NCBI RefSeq assembly: GCF_902713615.1
Contig: NC_052149.1
Span: forward strand, 87,933,519 to 87,997,518
Length of the DNA stretch: 64,000 nt
DNA from: Scyliorhinus canicula
Lineage: Eukaryota
Direction of reading: 5' to 3'
The notes under the pieces were generated by a model. That model worked only from the letters and a program-made list of their open reading frames with translations. It had not been told where the DNA came from and ran no database searches. A program made the translations under genes and the position numbers. This document shows, piece by piece, positions 28,677-64,000 of this stretch (positions are counted from its first letter, which is position 1; every line of letters begins with the position of its first letter).

Positions 28677-43510
<14,834 letters not shown>

Positions 43511-44140: not shown

Positions 44141-44293
44141 GACAAGATACAACTCGCTGTGATGCCTTCACTGTCCAATAGCCTGCCAACAGACAAGATA
44201 CAACTCGCTGTGATGCCTTCACTGTCCAATAGCCTGCCAACAGACAAGATACAACTCGCTGTGATGCCTTCACTGTCCAATAGTCTGCCAACA
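44141..44293. repeat. Tandem repeat, 3 x 51 bp
   Basis: Unit gacaagatacaactcgctgtgatgccttcactgtccaatagcctgccaaca; only one mismatch among the copies. Confidence 0.95.
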
Positions 44294-44600
44294 GCTCCTG
44301 TCCAGGATCACACAAGGAGCAGCCACTTGGATAAATAATAAGTGCAAGTTGAAACAGTGGAATGGTACTTTGGCAAAGGAGTAAATGCCCTCATGAGTGC
44401 AAAGAAAATTGACAAAAATATTAAACTGAAGAAGCCGCAGGATCTGTCTAATCTTGGCTGAATAATTCTCCTGGACTCTTTGGAAGCCTTCGCCCTGGCT
44501 TGTGCTACAGCAATGGCAGAATGATTTTTGAATCTCAAAGCATGGACTAGATTTTTATGAGCAAAAAAATGTTAGGAAATAAAACTGAGTCTTGTAAAGC

Positions 44601-45907: not shown

Positions 45908-46234
45908 ATGGCGAAATTAGCTGCGTATGTGAAGGCCCTGATCATAATCGTCTTTGTTTGTGTGCAAACAGTAATAGGCAAAATTATGCTCCTCCTCTTT
46001 CCTGAAATTGTGAAGTTAGTGCTAAAATCTGGGTTGAAAACCACCCTGACACAAAATCCAAAGTTCAAATATGAAGACTGGGGACTAACATTCTTCAGTT
46101 TGCGCTTTGTGAAGGCGGTGGCTCGGAACCTAATCATGAATTGTGCAGATGAAGCGTTTAAGGGCTCGCCTGCTCCAACACACGATTTGTTGATTTGGAG
46201 AATAAAGAACATAAAGTACTTGATTTTGTGAAAG
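45908..46234 (+). CDS. DIO1: DIO1 exon 1 (TM anchor; -1 frameshift near 46177)
   Basis: MAKLAAYVKALIIIVFVCVQTVIGKIMLLLFPE..TQNPKFKYEDWGLTFFS..DEAFKGSPAP; adding one base restores PNTRFVDLENKEHKVLDFVK and the phase-1 donor AAG|GTATGT. Confidence 0.9.
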
Positions 46235-46809
46235 GTATGTACGAATTAACGAAGATACGTGATAACAGTGGGAACTCTTCTGACAACCTGCTTAAAATTA
46301 AGGAAAGCAAATCCAGTTTTGTGTGTGTGACATAAATACTTTTTTAAAATTTAGAGTACCCAATTCATTTTTCGAATTAAGGGACAATTTAGTGTCCGCT
46401 GCACCACCGTGCTGCCCCCAACATAAACACTTTATGTGGCACCGTAGCATAGTGCTAGCACTGGTACTTGACTACGCCAGGGTCCAAGGTTCAATTCCTG
46501 GCTTGGGTCACTGACTGCGGAGTCTGCACGTTCTCCCTGTATCTGCGTGGGTTTCCTCCCGCTGCTCCGGTTTCCTCCCACAAGTCCCAAAAGACGTGCT
46601 GTTAGGTAATTTGGACATTCTGAATTCTCCGTTTTATCCAAACAGGTGCTGGAATGTAGCATCTAGGGGCTTTTCATAGTAACTTCATTGCAGTGTTAAT
46701 GTAAGCCTACATGTGACAATAAAAGATTATAATAGATTATTATGTAAGTGTGCCTCTCCCTAACTTCTGTATGTTATGTAACAAAGTGCACTTGCTCTTG
46801 AAGAATGTT

Positions 46810-47665
46810 GGGCGTGATTTACTGGCCTCGTGAGACTCGCAAAGCTTCAGATGTCTCAAGAAAGTCAACCAAACCTCGTGAAAAGCCGCGATCTGGATCT
46901 CGCCCTCTCATATTTAATGGCTCTATTAAATATATCTGTGCCCGATTCTCCTGGCCCCTGGGACTTAACGGCCATGCCTGGGAGACCTCGCCAGGGTACG
47001 ATTTAGCACTGGTTTCCACAAAGGTGGATCAGGCGTAACAACACCTGGGAGTGGTCTCCCGGGCTATTGGAGGCCACAGGGTGGTTGGGCTCTGGACAGA
47101 GTGGTACCCTGGCACTCCTGGCACACAGCTTGCCACTGCCATCTGGGCACCCTGGAAGTACCACTCTGGCTGCTTTGGGTGGCACCAGCAGTGCCAAGGT
47201 TGCCTTTGCCAGGGGTCAGCCCATGATACCTTGCCCGTAAAAGTGGGGTGAGTGGAGGAGGCTCGAGGACCCCAGAAGAGATAAGATGGCACCCTAATCC
47301 ATGAGTTATCTTCATAGAATCATAGAATTTACAGTGCAGATGAAGGCCATTTGGCCCAGCGAGTCTGCACCGGCCCTTGAAGCACCCCACTTAAGCCCAC
47401 GCCTCCACCCTATCCCCGGTAACCCAACTTAACCTTTTTGGACACTAAGGGCAATTTAGCATGGCCAATTCTTCTGCACTGATGAGCTCAGCTCACCAAT
47501 GCAGGAAATTATGTAAGTGCGACCTCCATAGGGTGTTCCTCATCGCGACCAAATAAAATGGCGAAGTGTCGTTGAATAATAGGGTCTTTCTCGCCGCTGT
47601 TTTCTTCTGGTTGAAGTGCACCCATTATCTCCAATCACTGTAATGTAATCTGGGCAATTACGCCC
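46810..47665. mobile_element. Harbinger-like non-autonomous element with nested SINE fragment (~47313-47470)
   Basis: Short TIRs gggcgtgatt / aattacgccc; GC-rich interior. Confidence 0.55.
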
Positions 47666-48309
47666 ACCATCAGGGAGTAACACTTAGCTCAATGCCAGAA
47701 AAATGCAGGCTATCAAACATGCAATACTAGATGAGGGTGGTATCATACCTAACATTGCGCATATTCTGATGGCCAATTTTGTGTAAGGCTGCATTAAGCC
47801 GTGCGTGGACCTGGGTGCATAAACAAAGTGTCACTACATGCTGAAGTTTTACCTTTCCCTGATTTTGCAACGGATGGGTCTGGCTTCATTGCTGCAGAAC
47901 GTTCCATTCAGTTTGTCTCTGTTGACCTACCTGTACTCATGGAAAGGTTTATGCAGAAAAACACATTTCATAGAATCATAGCGCAGTGCAGGAAGCCATT
48001 CGGCCCATCGAGTCAGCATCGAGTTATTGGAAATAGCACCCTACTTAAACCCACCCCTCCACCTTATCCCGTAATCTAGTAACCCCACCTAACATTTTGG
48101 ACACTAAGGGGCAATTTAGCTTGGCCAATCCACCTAATCTGCACATCTTTGGATTGTGGGAGGAATGCGGAGCACCCGGAGGAAACCCACACAGACACGG
48201 AGAAAGTGCAAACTCCACAAGTCATCCAAGGCCGGAGTTGAACCCAGGTCCCTGGAGCTGTGAGGTAGCAGTGCTAGCCACCATGCCACACATTTAACCA
48301 TAAACATTG

Positions 48310-48849
48310 TTCTGCATGTAATGCCTTTGAGGCCCTGCAGGAAAAGGAGACGGTGGATCCTGTCAGATGGTTCCCTAAGCAGATTGCCAAAGTCAGTTGG
48401 TAAAATGCCTCATTGCCAAAACTTTCAAACAGGTGCCAAGGCATAGTTTGGTTAATAAGAGGAGCCCTCCCCAGTCAAGTCCTTCCTACACACCTGGAGT
48501 CTCATCTGCACATTGTCCTTGAGGCAGCTGCAATGGGGAAGAAACCATTAACCACTTCCTGGAATATTCCTTGTAAAGCAGGTCTGGAAAAAATATGCAA
48601 CAGATTTTGTTGAGGTTCATCCCAAGTAGCTCTGTAATACACGGCTCTGCGCTGTATGTGCTATTCCGAGAGACACACACCAAGCTAAACATCAACTGCG
48701 GCTGGAGGACCAACAACTTGGTGAAAGACGCTGTTTGGTCTGCCTGAAACCTGATGGTTTTCCAGTACAAAGAGCTGTCAATGACAGAGAGTTGCAGACT
48801 CGCACATTCCAAGGTCCAGGACTACATCCTGAGAAACACTAAAGCTTGG
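48310..48849 (+). mobile_element. Tx1-like LINE 3' fragment interrupted by the Gypsy element (continues ~53402-53435)
   Basis: Remnant LVKDAVWSA*NLMVFQYKELSMTESCRLAHSKVQDYILR; the sequence rejoins across the gatag TSD. Confidence 0.6.
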
Positions 48850-48854
48850 GATAG

Positions 48855-51800
48855 TGTTATAACCTGCCTGCTTACCACTGGCTGGGGATTTATGGCAATC
48901 CCACAATCCTTTGGTAGTATGATCTTCCCAATGAGGGGGGCGGAGAAATCATTAGCAGATTAACGCTTGCCAGTTTGGAACCAGCTAGAGAAGAGTGAGC
49001 AGCAAGGGAGTTGTTGCTGCTGTTGTGTATATGTATATATATATGTTATTGTAAATAAATGTTATTTCTTTCTATCCTTCAACTTGTGCTGGATTCTTCA
49101 TGGCCCTTACAAAACTGGCGATGAGGGTTAAAGTGGATAGCTGTCTACGCTGCTGAAGCCACCTCCCTGGATTTTTGTTGGACAAAGGTTGTAAGTTGTT
49201 TTTCTGTTACGCCATGTCTCTCTATGGACGTTTGGATGCTGCGCTGGAAAGTTGGAACCAGTACACACAATGGTTGCGTTACTATTTCTGGGCAAACAAC
49301 ATCACCGAAAACGAGCGCCAGGTGGTCATTTTGCTCACCGCCTGCGGCCCCCATACGTTTGAGGTGATTAGGAGCCTTACGTACCCAGCTGCACTGGACA
49401 CCAAGGCGTTTGATGAACTTGTGAACTTATTGGGGCAACATTTTAACCCAACCCTGTCCACGATAGTCCAGCGTTACCGGTTTAATACTGCTGAGAGGAC
49501 CCCAGGAGAATCCCTTGCAGAGTTTCTATCCAGGCTACGCAAGATTGCGGAGTACTGTGAGACCTTGTCAGAAATGTTACACGACCGTTTGGTTTGCAGT
49601 ATTAACAATGCGGCCACCCAGAGAAAGATGTTAGCCGAGCCAACATTGACTTTTCAACAGGCCATTCAAATAGTTGTCCCGAGAGAGTGCAGAACGGGGA
49701 ATGCAGGAGCTACAGGGAATGGAGGTGCATGCCTTGGGGCGCAACCCCTTCCGTCCGAAAGCGTCCCCCTGCACCCCTGCGATACATTGGGCGAAGCGAC
49801 GTCCGGGTCGACGCCAGTGGCCGTTGGACATTCCTCCCCGAAGGGAGCCCTCTCCAGAACTAATGGATGAGGAGCCATGTCCACGTCGGACGTGTGGGCA
49901 CCGACCCCGTCACGGATGCCGGTCCTGGGGGCGCCAGAGGCGCCGTCGTTACAACAGAAACTGGAGCCAGCCCAGGGGCCGTACCTTCCATTTGGATGAA
50001 CCTGCGGCGAATACTCGCGAGGACGTGGAGACAGAGGACGACTGCCTGCAGCTGCATTGTGTGGCAGCTCCCCGTGTGGCCCCCATTAAGGTGACACTAT
50101 GGGTCAATGGTCACCTGCTTGAGATGGAGTTGGACACTGGCGCAGCGGTCTCCGTGATCGCCCAGAGGACATTCGACCGCATCAAGCAGGGTATACAGAC
50201 CCTTACATTAACCGACACACAGGCCAAGTTGGCCAACAACACGGGGGGAACCATTGGACATTGCAGGAACTACGATGACCCCTGTTGTTTATGGATGCCA
50301 GGAGGGGTGATTCCCATTTATCGTGGTGCGCGGTCACGGGCCCAGCCTATTGGGTCGGGACTGGTTGCGCCATTTGTAGCTGCAGTGGCAGCACATCCTC
50401 CAAACAGGTTCTGGAGGGTTGAATGAGGTGCTAGGACGGTACCTAGATGTATTCCAGCCCGGTTTGGGGAAAATAAAAGGGGCTGTAGCACGTATCCAAG
50501 TTGAACCAGGAGCCACGGCGCGCTATTTCTGGGCACGCTCGGTACCTTACGCCTTGCTCGAGAAGGAGACATTGGGTATGATATGGCCCGTCCGTTTCGC
50601 TGACTGGGCAGCACCAATTGTACCTGTAATGAAGCCAGATGCCACAGTTTGCTTGTGCGGCGACTAAATTTACAGTCAGTACAGCTTCCCGGCTCGACCG
50701 ATATCCATGCCTTGCATAGAGGATCTCTACGCGAAGCTTGCAGGCGGACTCATGTTCACGAAATTAGATATGAGTCACGCCTACCTACAGTTGGAGCTGG
50801 ACCCTGCCTCCCGGCCATATGTAACTATTAATACAAACCGGGGCCTGTATGAATATACACGGTTGCCCTTTGGGGTATCCTCGCCTGAGCTATTTTTCAA
50901 TGCGTCATGGAGGGCATCTTGAGAGGTTTACCGTGTGTCGCTGTCTACTTAGACAAATTTTTGATTACAGGGACGTGAGAGCCCCGACTGACACTTCGCA
51001 TCTTTGTTCTTTTCTCGGCCTCATAAACTATTACGGGAAGTTCCTCCCCAATCTGGTAACTACACTGGCCCTGCTGCACCTTCTGCTAAAGAAGAATCAC
51101 ATCTGGGATTGGGGTCAGCCGCAAGAAACCGCTTTCCGGCGGGTAAAACAACAATTGTTGTTGTCTGGGTTACTAACCCACTATGATCCTGGCAAGCCTT
51201 TGCTCATCAGGTGTGATGCATCCCATATGGTATTGGGACCGTCCTGTCCCACAAGGTGGAGAACGGGGCCGAGCAGCCGATAGATTTCGCCTCCCGCACA
51301 TTGACTGCAGCGGAAAAGAAGTACGCGCAGATAGAGAAGGAAGACCTGGCCGTGGTCTTTGCGGTGAAACGCTTCCACCAGTATGTATATGGCCGCCACT
51401 TCACTACTGTGACTGATCATAAGCCTCTGCTGGGACTTTTCCGAGAGGATAAGCCAATACCGCCCATTGCTTCCCCACGGATCCAGCGCTGGGCTTTGGT
51501 GTTCGCTGCCTACGAGTATTCTCTGGAGCACAAACCAGGAACCCAGATAGCGAATGTCGACGCAATGAGCCGATTGCCTTTATCGACCGGCCCCACCCCA
51601 CGACTGCTGAGGTGGTTGCAATCCTAAATTTTATGAACTCCTTGCCTGTCACAGCATCACAGATCCGTGAGTGGACCCAGACGGAGCCTTTCCTGTCAAA
51701 GGTTCGGCACATAGTCCTGTATGGTGAGCAGCAAAGACAGCTCCCAGGCGAGTTGCGGGCATTTTCCTCCACGCTGTCAGAATTTAGCGTGGAAGACGGT

Positions 51801-53396
51801 ATCCTCTTGTGGGGGACGCGTGTGGTTGTCCCGGAAAAAGGACAGGAGCAGATACTAAGGGACTTGCACAATGGGCATCCCGGTGTGACCAAAATGGAAA
51901 TGTTGGCCCGGAGTTGTGTCTGGTGGCCAGGCCTCGACACCGACATTGAGAAGGTGGCCCAAAACTGCTCCATTTGCCAGGAGCATCAGAAGCTTCCGCC
52001 GGCTGTGCCCCTACATCACTGAATGGCCAGGGCGGCCTTGGGCGCGCTTGCATGCGGATTTTGCCAGCCCTTTTCAAGGATCCATGTTCCTTCTATTAAT
52101 CGATGACCAGTCTAAATGTTTAGAGGTGCATAAGATGGGAGGCACAACGTCCTGCGCAACAATCGTGAAGATGCATTTGTCTTTCAGTACGCATGGCCTC
52201 CCCAAGGTGCTGGTCACAGACAATGGCACTCCGTGCACAAGTGAGGAGTTTGCGAGGTTCATGAAGATGAACGGCATACGCCATATCTGCACTGCTCCAT
52301 ACCACCCGGCTTCCAATGGGTTGGCGGAGCGCGCAGTGCAGACATTCAAACAAGGCCAAAAGAAGCAGTCTTCTGGGTCTATGGTCATGATACTGGCTTG
52401 TTTTTTTATTTCATATAGGATCACTCCACATGCGGTGACTGGGGTAGCTCCCGCGGAACTCCTATTGGGCCGGAGACTTTGTACCCGCCTTAGCATGGTT
52501 TTCTCGGATATTGGCATAAAAGTACGCTGCACTCAAGAACGGCAGGGACATGGTTTTTCTCGGCATCGGCCAATTCGGCAGTTTGCGCCCGTTGACCCAG
52601 TGTTCGTTCGAAATTTTGCTGGTGGTGCCCAGTGGGTCCCTGGCGTAATCTTTCGCCAAACGGGCCCTATCTCTTACCAGGTGCAAGTCCAGGGTCATCT
52701 CCAGCGCAAGCATATAGACCACGTTCGGTCCAGGAGACCATCTCTTCCAAAGCTTCCCTGCCCCCGGAGCTCATTTCTACAGCCACAGAGACAAGACACA
52801 GTGGAAAGTATTCCTCACAATCTTCCGCTGGTGCCGCACTCAAAGCCTGCGCAGGTCGTTGCAGAACCGTGTGGAGATAGAGACGCTGAGATGACAGAGG
52901 CAGCCGACTCCGAGATGGAGACACAGGACGCCTCAGAGGGGGAGTCCTCAGGCCCACCGGCCGTGGATGTACAACCGTTACGCTGTTCATCATGGAAGCG
53001 CCGTTCTCCATCTCGTTACACGCCGCCAGAGCCAGCGCCTTGTGCAAATGGTGTCTGGCCTGGGGCAAAATGAGTCTGACGCCCTCCTTCGCCAGGGTCT
53101 TTGGTGGATTCCTTGGACTTTGTGGGGGGGGGGGAGGGATGTTATAACCTGCCTGCATACCACTGGCTGCGGACTAATGGCAATCCCACAATCCTTTGGG
53201 AATATGAGCTTCCCCAAATGAGGGGGGCGGAGAAATCATTAGCAGATTCCCTGCATAATTAAAGCTGGCCAGTTTGAAACCAGCTAGAGAGGAGTGAGCA
53301 GCAAGGGAGTTGCTGCTGTGTGTGAGAGTGATATAATATAATGTTATTTCTTTCTATCCTTCAACTCGTGCTGGATTCTTCGTGGCCCTCACAAAA
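48855..53396 (+). mobile_element. Gypsy/Ty3 (Mag-like) LTR retrotransposon, complete structure, decayed ORFs
   Basis: LTRs 48855-49114 and 53140-53396; 5-bp TSD gatag (48850-48854, 53397-53401); PBS tggcgatgagg at 49116; PPT 53124-53139. gag from ATG 49214; protease LDTGAAVS; RT WAAPIVPV/KLDMSHAYLQ/RLPFG; RNase H CDAS/TDHKPL; integrase HNGH..C..C and D,D,E in Gypsy order. Confidence 0.95.
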
Positions 53397-53438
53397 GATA
53401 GCTGCTACAAAAGCGCAATGGGAAAATGCCACTTTAAG

Positions 53439-53471
<33 letters not shown>

Positions 53472-53833
53472 GGGATGGGACAATTGGGCGCGGCCGTTTG
53501 GACGCAGCCGTTTGGGCGCCATGGGACAATTGGGCGCAGCCAATTTGGCGCGGCCGTTTGGGCGCAGACGACAGAAATTCTTTTAGTTTTTGTGGCTAGT
53601 AACTTGTTGCAAATTGTTGCAAGTAAATTTAAAAACCTTAAATTAGTTCATTTAGTTTAGTTCATTTGGTGATTATGAGCAAGGCTCCTCAAGTACTCAA
53701 ATTTTCAAATTTAAGAACACTTTCATGTATTCTTTTATCTTTATTGTAAATTAAAAACCTTAAATTAGTTCATTTAGTTAAAAACCTTAAATTAGTTCAT
53801 TTAGTTAAAAACTAAAGTTAAAAAACCTTTAGT

Positions 53834-55475
53834 TTAGTTCATTTGGTAATTATGAGCAAGACTCCTCAAGTACTCGATAGCATCCATGTTTTCAAATTTT
53901 TTTTTTTTTTTTATAAATTTAGAATACCCAATTCATTTTTTTCAATTAAGGGGCAATTTAGCGTGGCCAATCCACCTACCCTGCACATCTTTTGGGTTGT
54001 GGGGGCAAAACCCACGCAGACACGGGGAGAATGTGCAAACTCCACACGGACAGTGACCCAGAGCCGGGATCGAACCTGGGACCTCGGCGCCGTGAGGCAG
54101 CAGGGCTAACCCACTGCGCCACCGTGCTGCCCTCATGTTTTCAAATTTAAGAACAGTTTCATGTATTCTTTTATCTGCATCTCTATACTTTTTTAGTTTT
54201 TGTGGCGGTTCATGGCCGGCTAGTAACCTTTCATAATATGCATCTCTACCTTTCTGTACTTTACGCAGGCCATCAATTAGTTTCCATATGGTGGGATGAT
54301 GCATGCCAAGTTCATATTTCAATCGACGGTGGGCTGCCTCCGCATTATTGTTTGTGCGGTCTTCCCCGTTTAATGTTCTCTGATAAAGGTTCCAAATCTC
54401 AGGGCGAAATAAAGGTGTTCGTCTACCATTTCCTCGTCTGTTCAGACGACCAACATATGTATCTTCAAACCAGTTGAGTAAATCTTGAAGTTCTTGCGGC
54501 AGTTGGGTCGCAAAAGCATCCAGATATTCATCGATTTTGTTCAAAGGTTTTAGCTTTTATCGCGAAATCTGGATCAGTGTTATACAAACTACGGAACCCC
54601 ATACTAGCTAGATGTTTTTGCATATTTTGAGCTAAATGAAAAAAACATCCTTTTATTTGAACATCAGGGAATATGTCTTTCATAGCACTGTGCGCAGCTT
54701 GTTCATAATCACAGACGATTGAACTGGGTTTCAAGTTGGGTTCGATTTCTTTCAATAATGCGAACATTCTCGTATATGTGGTGCATTGCTTGTTGGGCAA
54801 AAGAGCATAAACCGTAGGAGTAACTCCTCCGTGTTTTTTTACCATAATTACATATATCTGAGAAAAAAGAGGCTGGGAGCAATACTGAATGTGCCATCTG
54901 CAAACCACATATCAGATGTCAATAAGTGCTGTAGCCAGCTCTGTCTTCCGAAGATTAATATCCGGTCGTGACCTGGTCCGCTATCACAAAGTAAAAAATT
55001 TTCTTCCACTCCTGGTTGAGGGACATATATCCTGTAGCATTCTGGCACAATCAATTGTTGTAAATCACTTGGATTGGTGGGGGCGTTCAATACATAATTA
55101 CGCTTTCTGCTTATCATTCTCCTCAAAGCAGATATATTAGGAATGGCTGGTAGACTAGCTTGGGATATGTCTGTCAAACATTCATTAACAACTACAGTCG
55201 GTGCCTCAAGGGTTTCCTGTGCTCTCTTTTTTATTTTAGTTTTCACGAGTGCAACCTCTACTTGTGCAGCAGAAGCATCATGCGAATGGCTGTTCAGCTG
55301 CCTCACCACGTTTGCAGCTTTAGTATGGAGACGTGCTTTGCACCGGTTTTTTTTGCTCACAACGCCAAAATTTCACTTCGCTGTCACCTTTGCTTGTTTT
55401 GTCAAAGATGTAAAGGAATCTGTTATGAACAAATTTTTCTTTACCACGTTTTGTTGATACTGCCTCAGCCATCAT
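53834..55475 (-). pseudogene. FLYWCH-MULE transposase (disrupted)
   Basis: MMAEAVSTKRGKEKFVHNRFLYIFDKTSKGDSEVKFWRCEQK / NRCKARLHT..HSH / WFADGTF / IVCDYEQA..GCFFHLAQ / RTNNNAEAAHRRLK / DAIEYLRSLAHNYQMN*. Confidence 0.88.
53900..54133 (-). mobile_element. Poly(A)-tailed V-SINE inserted in the transposase 3' end
   Basis: 15-bp TSD catgttttcaaattt at 53885-53899 and 54134-54148. Confidence 0.92.
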
Positions 55476-56787
55476 ATGGGTATGCGAATTGGTTTAGTTA
55501 CAAAATATATAAAAAGATGGTGATAGAATGCACCAGCACCCAACTCAACGCACCCGCACCAGCAGCCAACTCACCTGAGGCTAATTCACAAATAAAGAAA
55601 TGTTATTTTGGCGCCAAAACAGCCGGCGCCAAAACGGTTGGCGCCAAAACGGCCGTGCCAAAACGGCCGCGCCCAAATGGCTGCGCCACAACGTACCTAA
55701 CCCCCCTTCCGATAGCATAATGAGGAGCCAGAATCTGTGGGAAACCCCTCTGATTATACACACAAACAAAATAAGGCAGATGCTGGAAATCTGAAATAAA
55801 AACAAAAAATGTTGTAAATGCCCAGCAGATCAAGCAGCATCTGTGAAGAGAAATAGAGTTAATCTTTCAGATCAATTACATTTATTGTGTGCTCTAATGA
55901 AATGCTATTTATCAGAATTGTTTAACAGCTTGGTGCAGCTGCATACAAAGGTGGCCATCAGGTTACTGGTGACTGGGTACTTTTTCTCCCCTTTAGAGAT
56001 TGGTGCACTGCGTTCCTACAGACATGGTCCATTTTCAATCTTCAGATAAAGTTTAAGATGACCTACACCGACATCAGGAGCACCACGCACCTAATGAGCA
56101 GGTTCTTACCAGTAAAGGCTCAGTAGGACAATTAATATATAACAGAAAGCTCCCCTAATAGGTAGATGCATTGTGGTATAAAGCCTTACCTAACAGAATA
56201 TTCTGGATTTGTGTGTCAGGCACTTGTTCGTCAAGATAACATCATAAAGCTACCTATTTCATTCAGCCATTTCATTATGGAGAAGTTATTGTTTTAGTTT
56301 TTTTGACTGTTTTGGATATATATGCTTTTGTTTTAATAGAATCATACAGCATTGAAGGAGGGCATTTTACTTTTTGAAAGAGCTATCTAATTAATTGTAC
56401 GCCCCTGCTCATTCCCTATACAGTTTTAAATATATATAAATTGCCTTTGAAAAATTACTAATGGATCTACCCTTTCAGGCAATGCATTCCCAAGCAAGAT
56501 AATTTGTACAAAAAAAATCTCATCTTCCCTTATGGTTTCTTTGCAAAATATTGTCATTTAAGTTGACAAAATTCCATGAAGAGAAAGCTCCTTTTTATTA
56601 TTCTTCAGTTCGTGTCTTATCATGCATTATTTCCATCACATCTTACGGGATTTGGTATGGTAAGTAATGTATATGTAAGAGTTGCATGTAGACTGCACTA
56701 ACTCTTATTGTTATACAGCAGTTTTCGAAAGTCTGTTGGTGGTTACAAACTCTTCTTATTCTACAATTATTTGTAGTAGATTAAAAT

Positions 56788-57320
56788 ATAAATTTAGAGT
56801 ACCAAATTATTTTCTAATTAAGGGTCAATTTAGCGTGGCCAATCCATCTAACCTGCACATCTTTGGGTTGTGAGGGTGAAACCCACGCAGACAGAAGGAG
56901 AACATAGGGGCCTCACGGTAGCATGGTGGTTAGCATCAATGCTTCACAGCTCCAGGGTCCCAGGTTCGATTCCCGGCTGGGTCACTGTCTGTGTGGAGTC
57001 TGCACGTCCTCCCCGTGTGTGCGTGGGTTTCCTCCGGGTGCTCCGGTTTCCTCCCACAGTCCAAAGATGTGCGGGTTAGGTGGATTGGCCATGCTAAATT
57101 GCCCGTAGTGTAAGGTTAATGGGGGGATTGTTGGGTTACAGGTATATGGGTTTAAGTAGGGTGATCATTGCTCGGCACAACATTGAGGGCTGAAGGGCCT
57201 GTTCTGTGCTGTACTGTTCTATGTTCTATGAGAATGTCCACATTGACAGTGACCCAGGGCCGGGATTCAAATCCGGGTCCTCAGCGCCATAGGCAGCAGT
57301 GCTAACTGCCGTGTCACCCT
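56788..57320 (-). mobile_element. Poly(A)-type V-SINE with a young HE1-type SINE (~56908-57229, +) nested inside
   Basis: Host SINE halves rejoin across a gagaa duplication; the nested copy is nearly identical to the copy at 2719-3054. Confidence 0.85.
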
Positions 57321-57696
57321 TGTAATAGTATTTTATGTTGAGGTAAAGAATAATGGTATTATACAAGCAGAGCTGTTGGAGCATAATTTAACAAAAAAGA
57401 AAATGCTTATACTTATCCATTATTTTCCCTCTTAAACTTAATTTTGTTCCCTCTCTGGATTAGTCATTTCACTGCAGATTGCCTTATATGGTAATCTATT
57501 GCTTAATTCTGTTAACTTCAGTACATTGTTATCCAAACTAATATTTGCTCTCTGTTTAGCACACCTCAGCAACTTTTCTGTTGCTACAGCCATGACCACT
57601 CAAGCTGACAGCTTTATTTTCATCTTGTTGCTGGGCTGACCCTTAACTCTCTCTCTTCTGTATCAACATCCATAGAATGACATGTTTTCTTTTCAG

Positions 57697-57836
57697 ATAA
57701 TAGACCACTGGTGTTGAGTTTTGGAAGCTGTTCCTGACCCCCATTTCTTTTCAAGTTTGCTGAGTTCAAGCAGCTTGTCGAAGTTTGCCTCTAGCTGATT
57801 TCCTCATTGTCTACATTCAGGAGGCTCATGCCACAG
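57697..57836 (+). CDS. DIO1: DIO1 exon 2 with UGA-selenocysteine codon (57735-57737); 4 nt short, frameshifted
   Basis: ttttcag|AT AAT AGA CCA CTG GTG TTG AGT TTT GGA AGC TGT TCC TGA CCC CCA; ADFLIVYIQEAHAT appears in a different frame after 57793; donor CAG|GTAC. Confidence 0.93.
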
Positions 57837-59012
57837 GTACGAAAAGATTACCGGAAGAAAATTACTTTTTGAGTTTGTTTCTTCATTGAACTGTTACTGT
57901 ATCTTCCTTGTTTACTGAAGGCTGGGTGATAAGATGCTTTGCTCAATATTCTGAGTTTATGTATTCCAGAAAGGTCCCAGGTTTCATCCCCAGACTGCTG
58001 GTTAACTGATCCCAGCTGAAGCTGGTAGCACTAGTCAGTTAGCTTACAAGAGAAATTGTCCAGAATTGCCCTATTGATCACTAGCTGATGAACCAAGTTA
58101 GAAATTGCAAATATGTATTGATGTTAGATGAGTATAAGATTAGCTGTGATTGCTGTCATGGTCAAATACCTCATGAACACTTGATGCTTAGGCAGTCACG
58201 AGGGAATGTTACAGGGGCACAATGCCAGAAGGCTGCTGCCAACTAAGAAAGCATGAGTATTTGTCTTGAGGATGGGAAAAACTAGGGGGTGTAACAGGGA
58301 AGAGATTTCATTCTTTATGTCTACACTATTGCTTCAGTGAAGTTCTTCCTTCTTTGTATTGAAATCAAAACTTTTTGTATTGCCCCCTACTTTTAATTGT
58401 ACTAAGCTTTTAAAATGAGTTAGTGGGTCTAGCTGATCTCAGCTGGAATAATAGTATGGGGACTGTAGTTGCTGTCTTCTCTTGATTAGTTTGCAGTGAT
58501 CCCTTTACTGAAGTGCCTGTGCTTGAAAACAACTGAAGACAAAATTAGGTTCTGCTGTAATATCCTCCACAATCAGCCAGCCTGTCAGCATATCCTGTTG
58601 TGGCTCACAAACAAATAATGAATGGGATGTTTCAAGTGCTATTATTGAAGAAACTGTATCCTAGTGAGAGTTATGCCCTTTATGAGGGGAAGAAATTTAA
58701 AACAAAGCTTGGTGCCCGCCCTCCCTCCATCATTGCTGCCTCGTATACTTTATCCTCTCTTCTGCATCTACCAATCCTGGTGGTGTCCAGTAAAATGTAT
58801 TTAGACCCTTTACCTAGGTTTCCTATCAGATTAAATTTCACCTGTTATGCTTTCTTCTTTACATAAATAAAGTTAGGAGTGTTTTGAGTCTATGTCAAAG
58901 TTTGACTAGTTCTACTCACTACCAAGTTTTAAAAATCCCATCTCATCTACAGCAAAATGACATGTGTGGTGCAATCTTTTCAATATTTGCAAAATGTTGC
59001 TATTCATTCCAG

Positions 59013-59212
59013 ATGGCTGGGCTTTCACAAACAAAGTGGATATCAAGCAACACAAAACATTAAGTGATCGTTTTGATGCAGCAAAGCTATTGCTAAGTGA
59101 GGAACCACCCTGCCCATTGGTAGTGGATACTATGGATAATGTAACTAGTGCCAAATATGCAGCTATGCCAGAGAGACTCTACGTGGTGCTCAATAACAGA
59201 GTCATTTACAAG
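59013..59212 (+). CDS. DIO1: DIO1 exon 3 ([14 protein letters not shown]...[15 protein letters not shown])
   Basis: 200 nt, intact, AG/GT boundaries. Confidence 0.96.
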
Positions 59213-59397
59213 GTAACATAGTATTTTGACACTTATGATGTGGCTATTGTCTATTCACTTAGTGATTTCACCACTAGATTTTGAGTTGATATTGTCTTTC
59301 TGCCCAAGTCAAGGAGCGCAGAATAATGCGTTTGATTTCTGGCTCCCTACTTTTCTTGAGGAAGTCAACTCATGCTGGGTTACAATTCCATATGAAA

Positions 59398-59700
59398 CAT
59401 AGAATCCCTACAGTGCAGAAGGAGGCCATTCGGCCCATTGAGTATGCACCAACCCTCCGAAAGCGCACCTTGCCTAGACCACAACCCCGCCCTATCCCCA
59501 AAACCCTGTAACCCACCTAACCTTTGGACACTAAGGGGCAATTTAGCATGTCCAATCCACCTAATATCTTTGGACTATGGGAAAAAACCGGAACACTCCG
59601 AGGAAACCCATGCAGACACGGGGAGAATCACAGTCACCCAAGGTCGGAATCAAACCCGGATTTTGGCGCTGTAAGACAGTCGTACTAACCATTGTGCCAC
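59398..59700 (-). mobile_element. HE1-type V-SINE
   Basis: Reverse complement of head, V domain and tail. Confidence 0.78.
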
Positions 59701-61029
59701 TCCGTCAATGTCAGTGACCCTCTAAAACTTCTATAATTTAATTGCCGTACAATTGTACTTCTGACCTGCTTGTTGTCTTGCTACGCTCCATGCTGTTAAA
59801 AAGAGTAAAAGCAGCAGTATGCTCACATTATTTTTTTTATTTACAAAACTCCCACGACAAAGAGTTGGGGAATGGCCATTCTTCACACTTATTGCTTAAA
59901 TCGAGCATTAGCTTTCAGACAAACCCAGGTTAGATTACTGTAACCAATTAGGGGAAGATGTACAGAGCATCAATGATGGTCATGAGGCCTGTTGGGGTGT
60001 TGAGCCATGCAAAATAGTTGAAATAATTAGAAGAGGTGATAGGTAAATTTGTGGATCTAATTTTATGAATTATTGAAGATTTTAAAGATTTATTGTTATT
60101 TTTGGAGGGATATATTTGGAGTTGGGTAGAATTTTTTTTGTGTTTGGCGAGAAAATTGAAATGTGGGGTAGATTTCTGTATTTGGTGAATATAGGAAGTA
60201 GGAAAGAAGGAAATATGACACTCATCCAGAGGAAATCAGCTCAACAATAACAGCATAGATGACAGATTTGGTACAGAAGTTTTATTATAACACTTTTTGC
60301 ATAAATGTTGGTGTTTGATCTTCAATCCAAGTGTAGCAGTACAATCAGCCGAATTAACTGAAAGTTTAAATAAAGCAGTAGACTTGGATGATTAAAGAAT
60401 GTTGGTTGTTAAAGCCTTTTTAAGCTAGCTTATCAGCAGTATGTTGTCGTGGTCTGTGGCATTCCTAAAATTAGATGTGTAGAGTCAAAGTAAAATGTTC
60501 TGTATTCGGACTGATAATGTCATGTCATGTGTGCTGATGCTTCATCCTGAGCCATTTATTGGCAGTTTTTGTTAGTGGTGGTTTGCCATTGCCTTCCACC
60601 GTCACGGGCAGGACAAGGAGACAGGTCGACCTGAGATGGAACAGGAATTAAATCCGTGCCATTAACATTATTGTGAAATGCATGCCAGCCATCTGGTTAT
60701 AGGAGCTAACCAGCCTCCATCATTAGGACTGACCTCAACTATTTGAGTATAGTGGTCATGTATAATTAGTGTTTATACCAATTTTATTTAGAATTTTATC
60801 GTGAAAGAAAACATGTAAACTTATAGAAACAGAAAACAGGGAGTATTTTATTTAGTGTTTTAAACTGGGCATTTGTGGCTGTGAAAGAATAATCGACATT
60901 AGCCCAATTTCATGGATAAGAAGATTAAAATAAGGTAGGTATTTATTTTGGAGGAGAAGAATATGGTTCCTTAAATCTGCTGGGTTACAAACAAGGCAAG
61001 TCAATGAATCATTATCTATGGCAAAGAGA

Positions 61030-61263
61030 GGGCGGCACAGTGGGTTAGCCCTGCTGCCTCACGGCGCCGAGGTCCCAGGTTCGATCCCGGCTCTGGGTCA
61101 CTGTCCGTGTGGAGTTTGCACATTCTCCCCGTGTTTGCGTAGGTTTCACCCCACAACCCAAAGATGTGCAGGCTAGGTGGATTGGCCACGCTAAATTACC
61201 CCTTAATTGGAAAAAATGAATTGGGTACTCTTTTAAAAAAAAAAAAAAAAAAATTTTTTTAAA
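61030..61263 (+). mobile_element. Poly(A)-tailed V-SINE with 14-bp TSD
   Basis: TSD ctatggcaaagaga at 61016-61029 and 61264-61277. Confidence 0.9.
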
Positions 61264-61329
61264 CTATGGCAAAGAGATTTTTAAAAAATTGTGTTTAATT
61301 CATCCATACAACTAATTTTTGTTTTTCAG

Positions 61330-61395
61330 GGTGAAATGAGACCTTGGGGATATAAACCAGAAGAAGTACGATTAGTTTTACAAAAACTAAGTTAA
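61330..61395 (+). CDS. DIO1: DIO1 exon 4 coding part (GEMRPWGYKPEEVRLVLQKLS*)
   Basis: Acceptor tttttcag|G; matches the DIO1 C-terminus GxxGPWxYxPEEVR. Confidence 0.94.
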   Translation, partial: GEMRPWGYKPEEVRLVLQKLS

Positions 61396-62824: not shown

Positions 62825-62893
62825 ATTTTAGGTATATTGTTTATGAAGCTTACAGCCCAAACCAGAGAAAGCTGTGGCCTGATGTTCTGAAAT
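62825..62893 (+). promoter_or_regulatory. SECIS element (type I) of DIO1
   Basis: Helix I attttagg/tctgaaat; core ATGAA (62843-62847) / TGAT (62880-62883); helix II gcttacagc/gctgtggcc with one C-C mismatch; apical AAA. Confidence 0.88.
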
Positions 62894-63617
62894 GTAGCTA
62901 AGAGCATGTAAATAAGTGAGATGAAGTTTTATATTCTGTACTTCTGTATATTAAACAATTACTACTCAACCAATGTTTTGAATGTTTTCATTGTATTAAG
63001 TGGAAAAGATAATTTATCCGAAAGGGAATGGAGTATTTATGTTACATTTAGTACCCCAAATTGTTTTAAATATAAAACCAATTCATAGTTGTAAGCAAAA
63101 TTGACATGAATGTCTTCAATTCAGAAGCTTAAGTATTGGTTGAAAGTTTAGTGTGGTGACCAATAAACAAAGTCTGTGGACTGGCAGAATGAGGTGAAGC
63201 AGTGGAAAGTAAGAAAGTACAGTACAAGTACTGTTGGTGGGTCTGGAATTACTCTTGTGTCAGAAAAAATAATCATGTACCAGAGAAAGACCTTCCGAGT
63301 AGTGCAAGTTGAAGATGTTGCAGTAGTTGTGATGGACTATTCAGATGTTGATAAAAGATACTTTCAGGAGTTACTAAAGACGACTATGACAGTGTAGCAA
63401 AACAAGAAGAATTTATTCATATGGATCAATAATTATGCATTGTAACAAATATTGACAACATATTTGTACTAGGAGGTGGATTGACGACGCTAAATTGCCC
63501 CTCAATTGGTAAAGAATAATTGGGTACTCTAAAAAAATTTTAAAATATTTGTACTAGTAATATTGTGCAGCTTCAGTGTTTGAAAATCTTGTTCTTCAAC
63601 AGTTGTGCTGCATAGAC

Positions 63618-63725
63618 TCAAGCACTTTCCTCTGTACCTTCCACTGTAACCTTGTGTATTGACACAAAGTGATCAAAACCAGATTTTATGAGAAACCGAA
63701 GGTGTGTGGCGCTGGTTCCATCCTG
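63618..63725 (-). CDS. IFT25: IFT25/HSPB11 last coding exon ((Q)DGTSATHLRFLIKSGFDHFVSIHKVTVEGTEESA*)
   Basis: Matches the IFT25 (HSPB11) C-terminus ATxLRFxIxSxFDHFxSxH; CAGCAG acceptor; TGA 63618-63620; minus-strand AATAAA 63412-63417; syntenic position downstream of DIO1. Confidence 0.9.
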   Translation of the reverse strand, partial: QDGTSATHLRFLIKSGFDHFVSIHKVTVEGTEESA

Positions 63726-64000
63726 CTGCATAAGAAATATACTTTGTTACTTCACATTACCTTTTAAAAAAAATACTGCTATTCATTAGCTTAGTTGTAG
63801 AAATGCTGGTGAATGCATTACAGAGTTACATAGTCCAAAAGGTTCCAGGTTTGATTCCTGCTCTGTGCTCAGTTAGATTATTACAACTAATGGAACAAAG
63901 GGGCGCTAAATTGCTTTGATGTTTGAGTTAAGAAAAAAACTGTCTGTTCCTGTTCAGTGAAAACTACTGGAAAACACAATCAAGGGATAGGAACAGCTCT

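Follow-up and report, generated by a model that had tools for sequence, protein, structure and literature searches.

DIO1 encodes type I deiodinase, a selenoenzyme of thyroid hormone metabolism, and was present in every jawed vertebrate surveyed in two papers (PMC3316567, PMC13134290). The second of them, a 2026 survey of vertebrate selenoproteomes with nine cartilaginous fishes included, reports DIO1 in all lineages but cyclostomes (PMC13134290). According to the same papers, selenocysteine (Sec) was exchanged for cysteine in SELENOP2 of sharks, and SELENOW was lost in Chondrichthyes (PMC13134290; PMC3316567). The neighbourhood of the gene has been described as a yipf1-dio1-hspb11-lrrc42 block (PMC6984359). 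Here we analysed a stretch of 64,000 nucleotides (nt) of DNA from a catshark-like shark close to Scyliorhinus (contig NC_052149.1, positions 87,933,519 to 87,997,518 of the forward strand; "the window" below means this whole stretch), which carries a DIO1 gene with a broken reading frame. An earlier note, made from the letters of the window, had proposed that this DIO1 was inactivated. Our analysis supported the proposal in part, through the broken frame at a syntenic, intron-bearing locus together with signs of decay in the sequence, and DIO1 is here probably a unitary pseudogene, younger than the divergence from Scyliorhinus torazame.

Other elasmobranch DIO1 sequences served as the comparison set: S. 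torazame scyTo_0015503 (P0157, a partial model), Cetorhinus maximus (P0158), Chiloscyllium punctatum (P0183), and L001 and L002, which are Logan transcript contigs representing complete or nearly complete chondrichthyan DIO1 complementary DNAs (cDNAs). These relatives were gathered by a representative search with exon 3 plus word-index searches, and L002 (Logan SRR6291316) derives from a pooled fish meta-transcriptome project. P0158 and P0183 are in-frame NCBI isoforms of DIO1 that skip exon 2 and so have no selenocysteine active site; full-length Sec forms of C. maximus and C. punctatum DIO1 were absent from the protein collection searched. The gene in the window has four exons with these features:

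45908-46234, + strand: DIO1 exon 1, 327 nt, with the ATG at 45908, the transmembrane anchor and linker, and the donor GT at 46235
57697-57836, + strand: DIO1 exon 2, 140 nt, with the catalytic core GSCS-U-PPF
57735-57737, + strand: Sec codon TGA, kept in frame in the active-site motif
59013-59212, + strand: DIO1 exon 3, 200 nt, open, with the private replacements N165K (AFTNK) and V193L (CPLVVD)
61330-61395, + strand: DIO1 exon 4, with GEMRPW (G228R) and the stop TAA at 61393-61395

The total coding length is 733 nt, where 741 nt are expected. GT-AG borders of good consensus stand at all three introns (AAAG/GTATGT and ttttcag/AT, ACAG/GTACGA and cattccag/AT, AAG/GTAACA and ttttcag/GG), and by reading, the ATG, all six splice sites and the Sec UGA are retained. 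The Pfam profile T4_deiodinase (PF00837) matched exon 1 at profile positions 3-83 (E=3e-5), a match that ends at the frame break, exon 3 at positions 149-216 (E=1.9e-23) and exon 4 at positions 214-236 (E=5e-3), the last with the translation GEMRPWGYKPEEVRLVLQKLS followed by the stop. In word-index searches the best protein matches were annotated type I deiodinases. In a tree of DIO1 sequences, built without DIO2 and DIO3, the window gene was sister to S. torazame DIO1 (support 98/97) inside the chondrichthyan DIO1 clade, and the two were 93% identical over 203 columns, with 16 differences. The gene order in S. torazame is YIPF1 (-), DIO1 (+) and a gene of 140 amino acids (aa) (-). Because these neighbours agree with the YIPF1 rebuilt upstream and the IFT25/HSPB11-like exon found downstream in the window, the locus is the ancestral one. 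Thus the window gene is the DIO1 orthologue at its ancestral locus with its introns kept, and not a retrocopy. The coordinates and counts given by the earlier note all proved correct on re-reading.

To place the lesions, we joined the exons of the window gene and aligned their nucleotides with the cDNAs L001 and L002. This alignment showed three gaps in the window, one of 3 nt in frame and one of 1 nt, both in exon 1, and one of 4 nt in exon 2:

46013-46016, + strand: one AAG (Lys) codon missing with the frame kept, a three-letter gap between GT and GAAG in the alignment
46175-46178, + strand: 1-nt deletion that shifts the frame, gct cc/a aca against gct ccc aat aca in relatives
46229-46231, + strand: premature TGA that follows from the frameshift and stands 4 nt before the exon 1 donor
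57783-57794, + strand: lesion with a net loss of 4 nt, either two breaks (after 57783 and at 57793) or a single 4-nt gap, and the resulting TAG at 57792-57794

Exon 1 is one nucleotide short: it has 327 nt, and 328 are needed to fit the phase of exon 2. Read in the frame of the ATG, it ends with ...GSPAPTHDLLIWRIKNIKYLIL and then meets the TGA, which gives a product of 107 aa, and the continuation expected of DIO1, NTRFVDLENKEHKVLDFVK, sits in the +1 frame of the exon. The gap was placed at GCT-CCAAC, 46176/46177, within the CCC or AAA run. The earlier note had claimed exactly this lesion, with a base missing near 46177, and it held when the exon was re-read and aligned with the cDNAs. The loss of the Lys codon was absent from its list of lesions and is newly found here: the window has EIVK-LVLK where S. 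torazame has EIVKKLVLK, in an AAGAAG context, and the lost column is K or R in 78/81 orthologues.

Exon 2 has 140 nt against 144 nt in the cDNAs, a net change of -4. It opens in the correct frame and later shifts twice, with ADFLIVYIQEAHAT in another frame, and the path runs through frames 3, 1 and 2 across gtcgaa g / tttgcctct / a gctgat. The claim that this exon is out of frame with a TAG at 57792-57794 stood. Its further part, that two 2-nt deletions are the best reading, is preferred by the protein, since they yield E-x-F-A-S-x-A-D-F, matching DF(N/S)S(V/I)ADF of the relatives, and is nearly a tie by DNA, where one 4-nt deletion with substitutions fits about equally (4 vs 3 mismatches). 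Because the one-gap and two-gap readings of the DNA differ by one mismatch, we count two or three frameshifting events and one in-frame event. This lesion lies outside any homopolymer, 11.5 kb from that of exon 1, and its stop stands 18 codons past Sec, before the region of the EAH catalytic histidine.

No uninterrupted frame runs across all DIO1 exons, with stops at 46229 and 57792, and DIO1 as assembled cannot, judging by its frames, make a deiodinase. The two frame breaks are independent: that of exon 1 (-1 nt) leaves only the membrane anchor and linker, and even with exon 1 mended, the stop brought about by the -4 nt of exon 2 would still precede the EAH region. Rescue by an alternative start, an alternative donor or skipping of exon 2 was also considered; it restored no frame and was rejected, because the stop at 46229 precedes the exon 1 donor and the frame after the shift has no ATG.

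We then compared the frame of DIO1 with that of coding sequences nearby in the window, which served as controls:

28677-43510, - strand: YIPF1, 8 coding exons, 933-nt open coding sequence, 310 aa
13391-14371, - strand: orphan coiled-coil open reading frame (ORF) downstream of YIPF1, 326 aa, 981 nt, open, used solely as an indel control
63621-63746, - strand: last coding exon of an IFT25/HSPB11-like gene, open, identified by reading, with no Pfam match

YIPF1 was rebuilt from exons on the - strand at 43510-43480, 42088-41925, 41129-41049, 40706-40619, 39194-39078, 36938-36772, 32044-31862 and 28778-28677; the Pfam Yip1 profile matched in order along them, and the protein has the same length as the Yip1-domain gene of S. 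torazame (310 aa in both). The orphan ORF gave a weak, sub-threshold match to ATG17_like (23 bits, with the cutoff at 43). Zero frame breaks were seen in YIPF1 (933 nt), the orphan ORF (981 nt) and DIO1 exons 3-4 (266 nt), about 2,180 nt in total, and several ORFs of transposable elements in the window are open over more than 1.1 kb. The same controls had been put forward by the earlier note as free of indels, and we confirmed this for YIPF1 and the orphan ORF, with the IFT25-like exon open.

Signs of decay were also looked for in the residues. L47, F94, K165, L193 and R228 of the window gene occur in 0/88 DIO1 orthologues; at these positions N165 is found in 88/88, G228 in 86/88 and V193 in 82/88. 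About nine replacements are private to the window DIO1. The GEMRPW of exon 4 reported in the earlier note was borne out (S. torazame has GEMGPW); the conservation of the GxxGP glycine holds within DIO1 (86/88) and is looser across the whole deiodinase family than had been stated, 96/145 over sequences of which some are truncated models. P60L (WGPTF) was considered as another sign of decay and dropped, for L occurs there in 20/87 orthologues. The terminal branch of the window gene was 0.051 against 0.019 in S. torazame, which means 2.7 times longer, and polarisation with outgroups gave 8 changes in the window against 3 in S. torazame, the three in S. torazame being at variable sites. Thus the pseudogene reading is supported by a private in-frame codon loss, five unprecedented residues, a longer branch and clean neighbours.

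Several points weigh against it. The 8 vs 3 polarised changes are not significant by count alone (binomial p about 0.11), and some functional orthologues also depart from the consensus at several columns, such as that of Chiloscyllium punctatum, with 5 departures at columns conserved to at least 90%, compared with 7 in the window. The ratio of nonsynonymous to synonymous substitution rates (dN/dS) was 0.26 over the long branch that separates the window from L001 and L002, vs 0.20 and 0.22, in a three-taxon analysis that is uninformative for a late event; this value means that most of the history of the lineage passed under constraint. The 2026 survey, with nine cartilaginous fishes, reports the presence of DIO1 in all lineages except cyclostomes, at the level of lineages (PMC13134290). 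Finally, the lesion of exon 1 falls in a 3-base CCC/AAA homopolymer, the commonest type of consensus error with long reads.

This last point bears directly on an error of assembly or consensus, by which the gene would still work, with the -1 and -4 nt as indel errors of long reads left uncorrected. Such an error would also fit the low dN/dS of the long branch and the intact state of the ATG, the splice sites, the UGA and a SECIS-like hairpin (SECIS, selenocysteine insertion sequence; described below). No independent read-derived contig of the species was found: a search of read-derived sequence with the 107-aa exon 1 product gave no match, and an exact look-up of the exon 3 ORF returned nothing on record. 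But two or three frameshifts fall in the 467 nt of exons 1-2, against zero in the roughly 2,180 nt of the control sequences, and at a uniform rate of 1 per kb the probability of 3 or more would be about 0.01, and far lower at realistic rates. Because the lesions cluster in exons 1-2 of DIO1 and the neighbours are clean, uniform assembly error fits poorly. The lesion of exon 2 is not homopolymeric, and the spacing of 11.5 kb needs two patches of error, each of them in coding sequence. An error of this kind also leaves three things without explanation: the Lys codon lost in frame, the five residues seen in no orthologue and the terminal branch 2.7 times as long as that of S. torazame. We regard it as unlikely.

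The 3' untranslated region (UTR) contains a candidate for one more element of the selenoprotein machinery:

62830-62900, + strand: SECIS-like hairpin in the 3' UTR, with AUGA at 62843-62846, an AAA apical loop at 62859-62861 and UGAU at 62880-62883

By eye, a helix of about 9 bp lies between the AUGA and UGAU motifs, and the hairpin aligns with the 3' UTR of the cDNA L002. Scans of 20 kb and of 161 nt gave no Rfam SECIS match, even at E<=10. The earlier statement that splice sites, UGA and SECIS are intact was therefore borne out by reading for the first two, and the SECIS is a putative one, supported by its motifs. At the position homologous to the window UGAU, L002 itself reads UAAU (L002:1735-1805), and its coding sequence is open with UGA but has GPSGY for GPWGY and CPMVVD for CPVVVD. 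These oddities could be due either to an error in the contig, to a SECIS core located elsewhere, or to DIO1 drifting in that species too.

The earlier note had called the loss recent. In S. torazame, exon 1 keeps its frame as far as ...APNTRVVDLENKEHKVLDFVKDNRPL, so the frameshift of exon 1 and the loss of the Lys codon are younger than the divergence of the two species. The protein model of S. torazame avoids the UGA by passing directly from DNRPL to EAHAT and is therefore uninformative on the lesion of exon 2. The proposed course is that constraint on DIO1 would have been lost after divergence from S. torazame, and that small deletions, one of them in frame, would then have accumulated together with replacements at positions otherwise fixed. 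The time elapsed would have been too short for a hit in the ATG, the splice sites, the UGA or the SECIS, which are small targets. Together these intact elements come to only about 25 critical bases, so all that follows from their survival is an upper limit of a few percent on neutral divergence since the gene was inactivated. The four indel events and about nine private replacements suggest, as far as the sequence can tell, an age of millions of years and not a mutation that has just arisen. The word "recent" is fair on the time-scale of sharks, given the in-frame exon 1 of S. torazame and the dN/dS of 0.26, but the four indel events suggest that the age may be counted in millions of years.

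The same count bears on whether the sequenced individual carried a dead allele, with functional alleles persisting in the species. One haplotype is seen here, and mouse Dio1 knockouts are viable; with the loss of type 1 deiodinase (D1) activity tolerated in mice, null alleles could drift. But four indel events and the unusual replacements imply a long time without constraint, and a segregating allele would have to be very old. We consider an unfixed null haplotype quite improbable. That the syntenic copy decayed after a duplication, with a functional DIO1 elsewhere in the genome, is highly improbable: one DIO1 each came from other cartilaginous fishes among the matches listed, and the decayed gene occupies the conserved YIPF1-DIO1-HSPB11 block. 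For the pseudogene reading in its full form, a fixed loss of DIO1 in a jawed vertebrate with no compensating copy, which would leave hormone economy and iodine salvage to DIO2 and DIO3 alone, we see roughly even chances. On the pseudogene reading as such, the animal would be without D1 activity, and DIO2 and DIO3 would handle the activation and inactivation of thyroid hormone.

As a reason for the loss, the earlier note had pointed to the iodine-replete sea. This rationale is weak, for the DIO1 sequence recovered from other marine sharks is in frame: for Cetorhinus and Chiloscyllium this covers exons 1, 3 and 4, for S. torazame the same three exons plus the ends of exon 2, and for the chondrichthyan cDNAs L001 and L002 the whole coding sequence. 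Because all these sources are marine as well, an iodine-rich sea alone fails to explain the loss, and neutral loss of a dispensable enzyme is a simpler reading than an adaptive story.

Some further features of the region were noted. The first coding exon of YIPF1 (43480-43510, - strand, 31 nt) lies 2.4 kb from the ATG of DIO1, with the two genes head to head, a layout that suggests a shared bidirectional promoter region. Between them, at 44141-44294, there is a tandem repeat of 51 nt in 3 copies with 99% matches. Intron 1 of DIO1 contains a decayed pol of a long terminal repeat (LTR) retrotransposon at 49175-53073 (+ strand), with Pfam matches at 49674-50423 (aspartyl protease) and 51916-53070 (integrase core). 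At 53945-55360 (- strand) three consecutive long ORFs of 200, 126 and 170 aa resemble, by reading, a gene derived from a DNA transposase; the 200-aa and 170-aa ORFs were scanned and gave no Pfam match.

Our literature searches found no report of a DIO1 loss or a DIO1 pseudogene in a shark. If the loss is real and fixed, with no compensating copy, this would be the first loss of DIO1 to be reported outside the cyclostomes, in a jawed vertebrate, and a young one, with the dead gene almost whole. Such a natural knockout in a shark would provide a comparative test of the role of D1, systemic supply of triiodothyronine (T3) versus clearance of sulphated iodothyronines and iodine salvage. The osmotic and iodine physiology of this lineage is very different, which would make the case more useful, and if the species is a laboratory catshark, enzyme assays could be run on it directly. 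Older reports describe hepatic deiodination in elasmobranchs as D2-like and not D1-like, and a loss of DIO1 would help to interpret them. There is also a warning for annotation: when a pipeline avoids the UGA by splicing, as happened with the S. torazame model, lesions of this kind can be concealed or imitated.

Compared with other elasmobranch DIO1 genes, the window gene has in common the four exons, the phase-1 intron after exon 1, GSCS-U-PPF, EAHATDGWAF and the C-terminal motifs, and also the SECIS-like element of the 3' UTR and the neighbours YIPF1 and HSPB11. It alone among those examined has a frame broken in exons 1 and 2, a lost Lys codon and five private residues. One likeness is the cyclostome loss of DIO1, as given in the survey (PMC13134290): in both, a vertebrate lineage would be left without a working type 1 deiodinase, with DIO2 and DIO3 remaining. 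But on that account the gene is gone from a whole ancient clade in cyclostomes, whereas the shark of the window would have a nearly complete, recently disabled gene still at its locus, in one lineage whose sister species has exon 1 in frame. That genes are lost through small frameshifts is well known. The changes in SELENOP2 and SELENOW resemble the present case as lineage-specific erosion of the selenoproteome, but those events are documented and common to large clades, whereas the DIO1 lesions of the window belong to one shark lineage.

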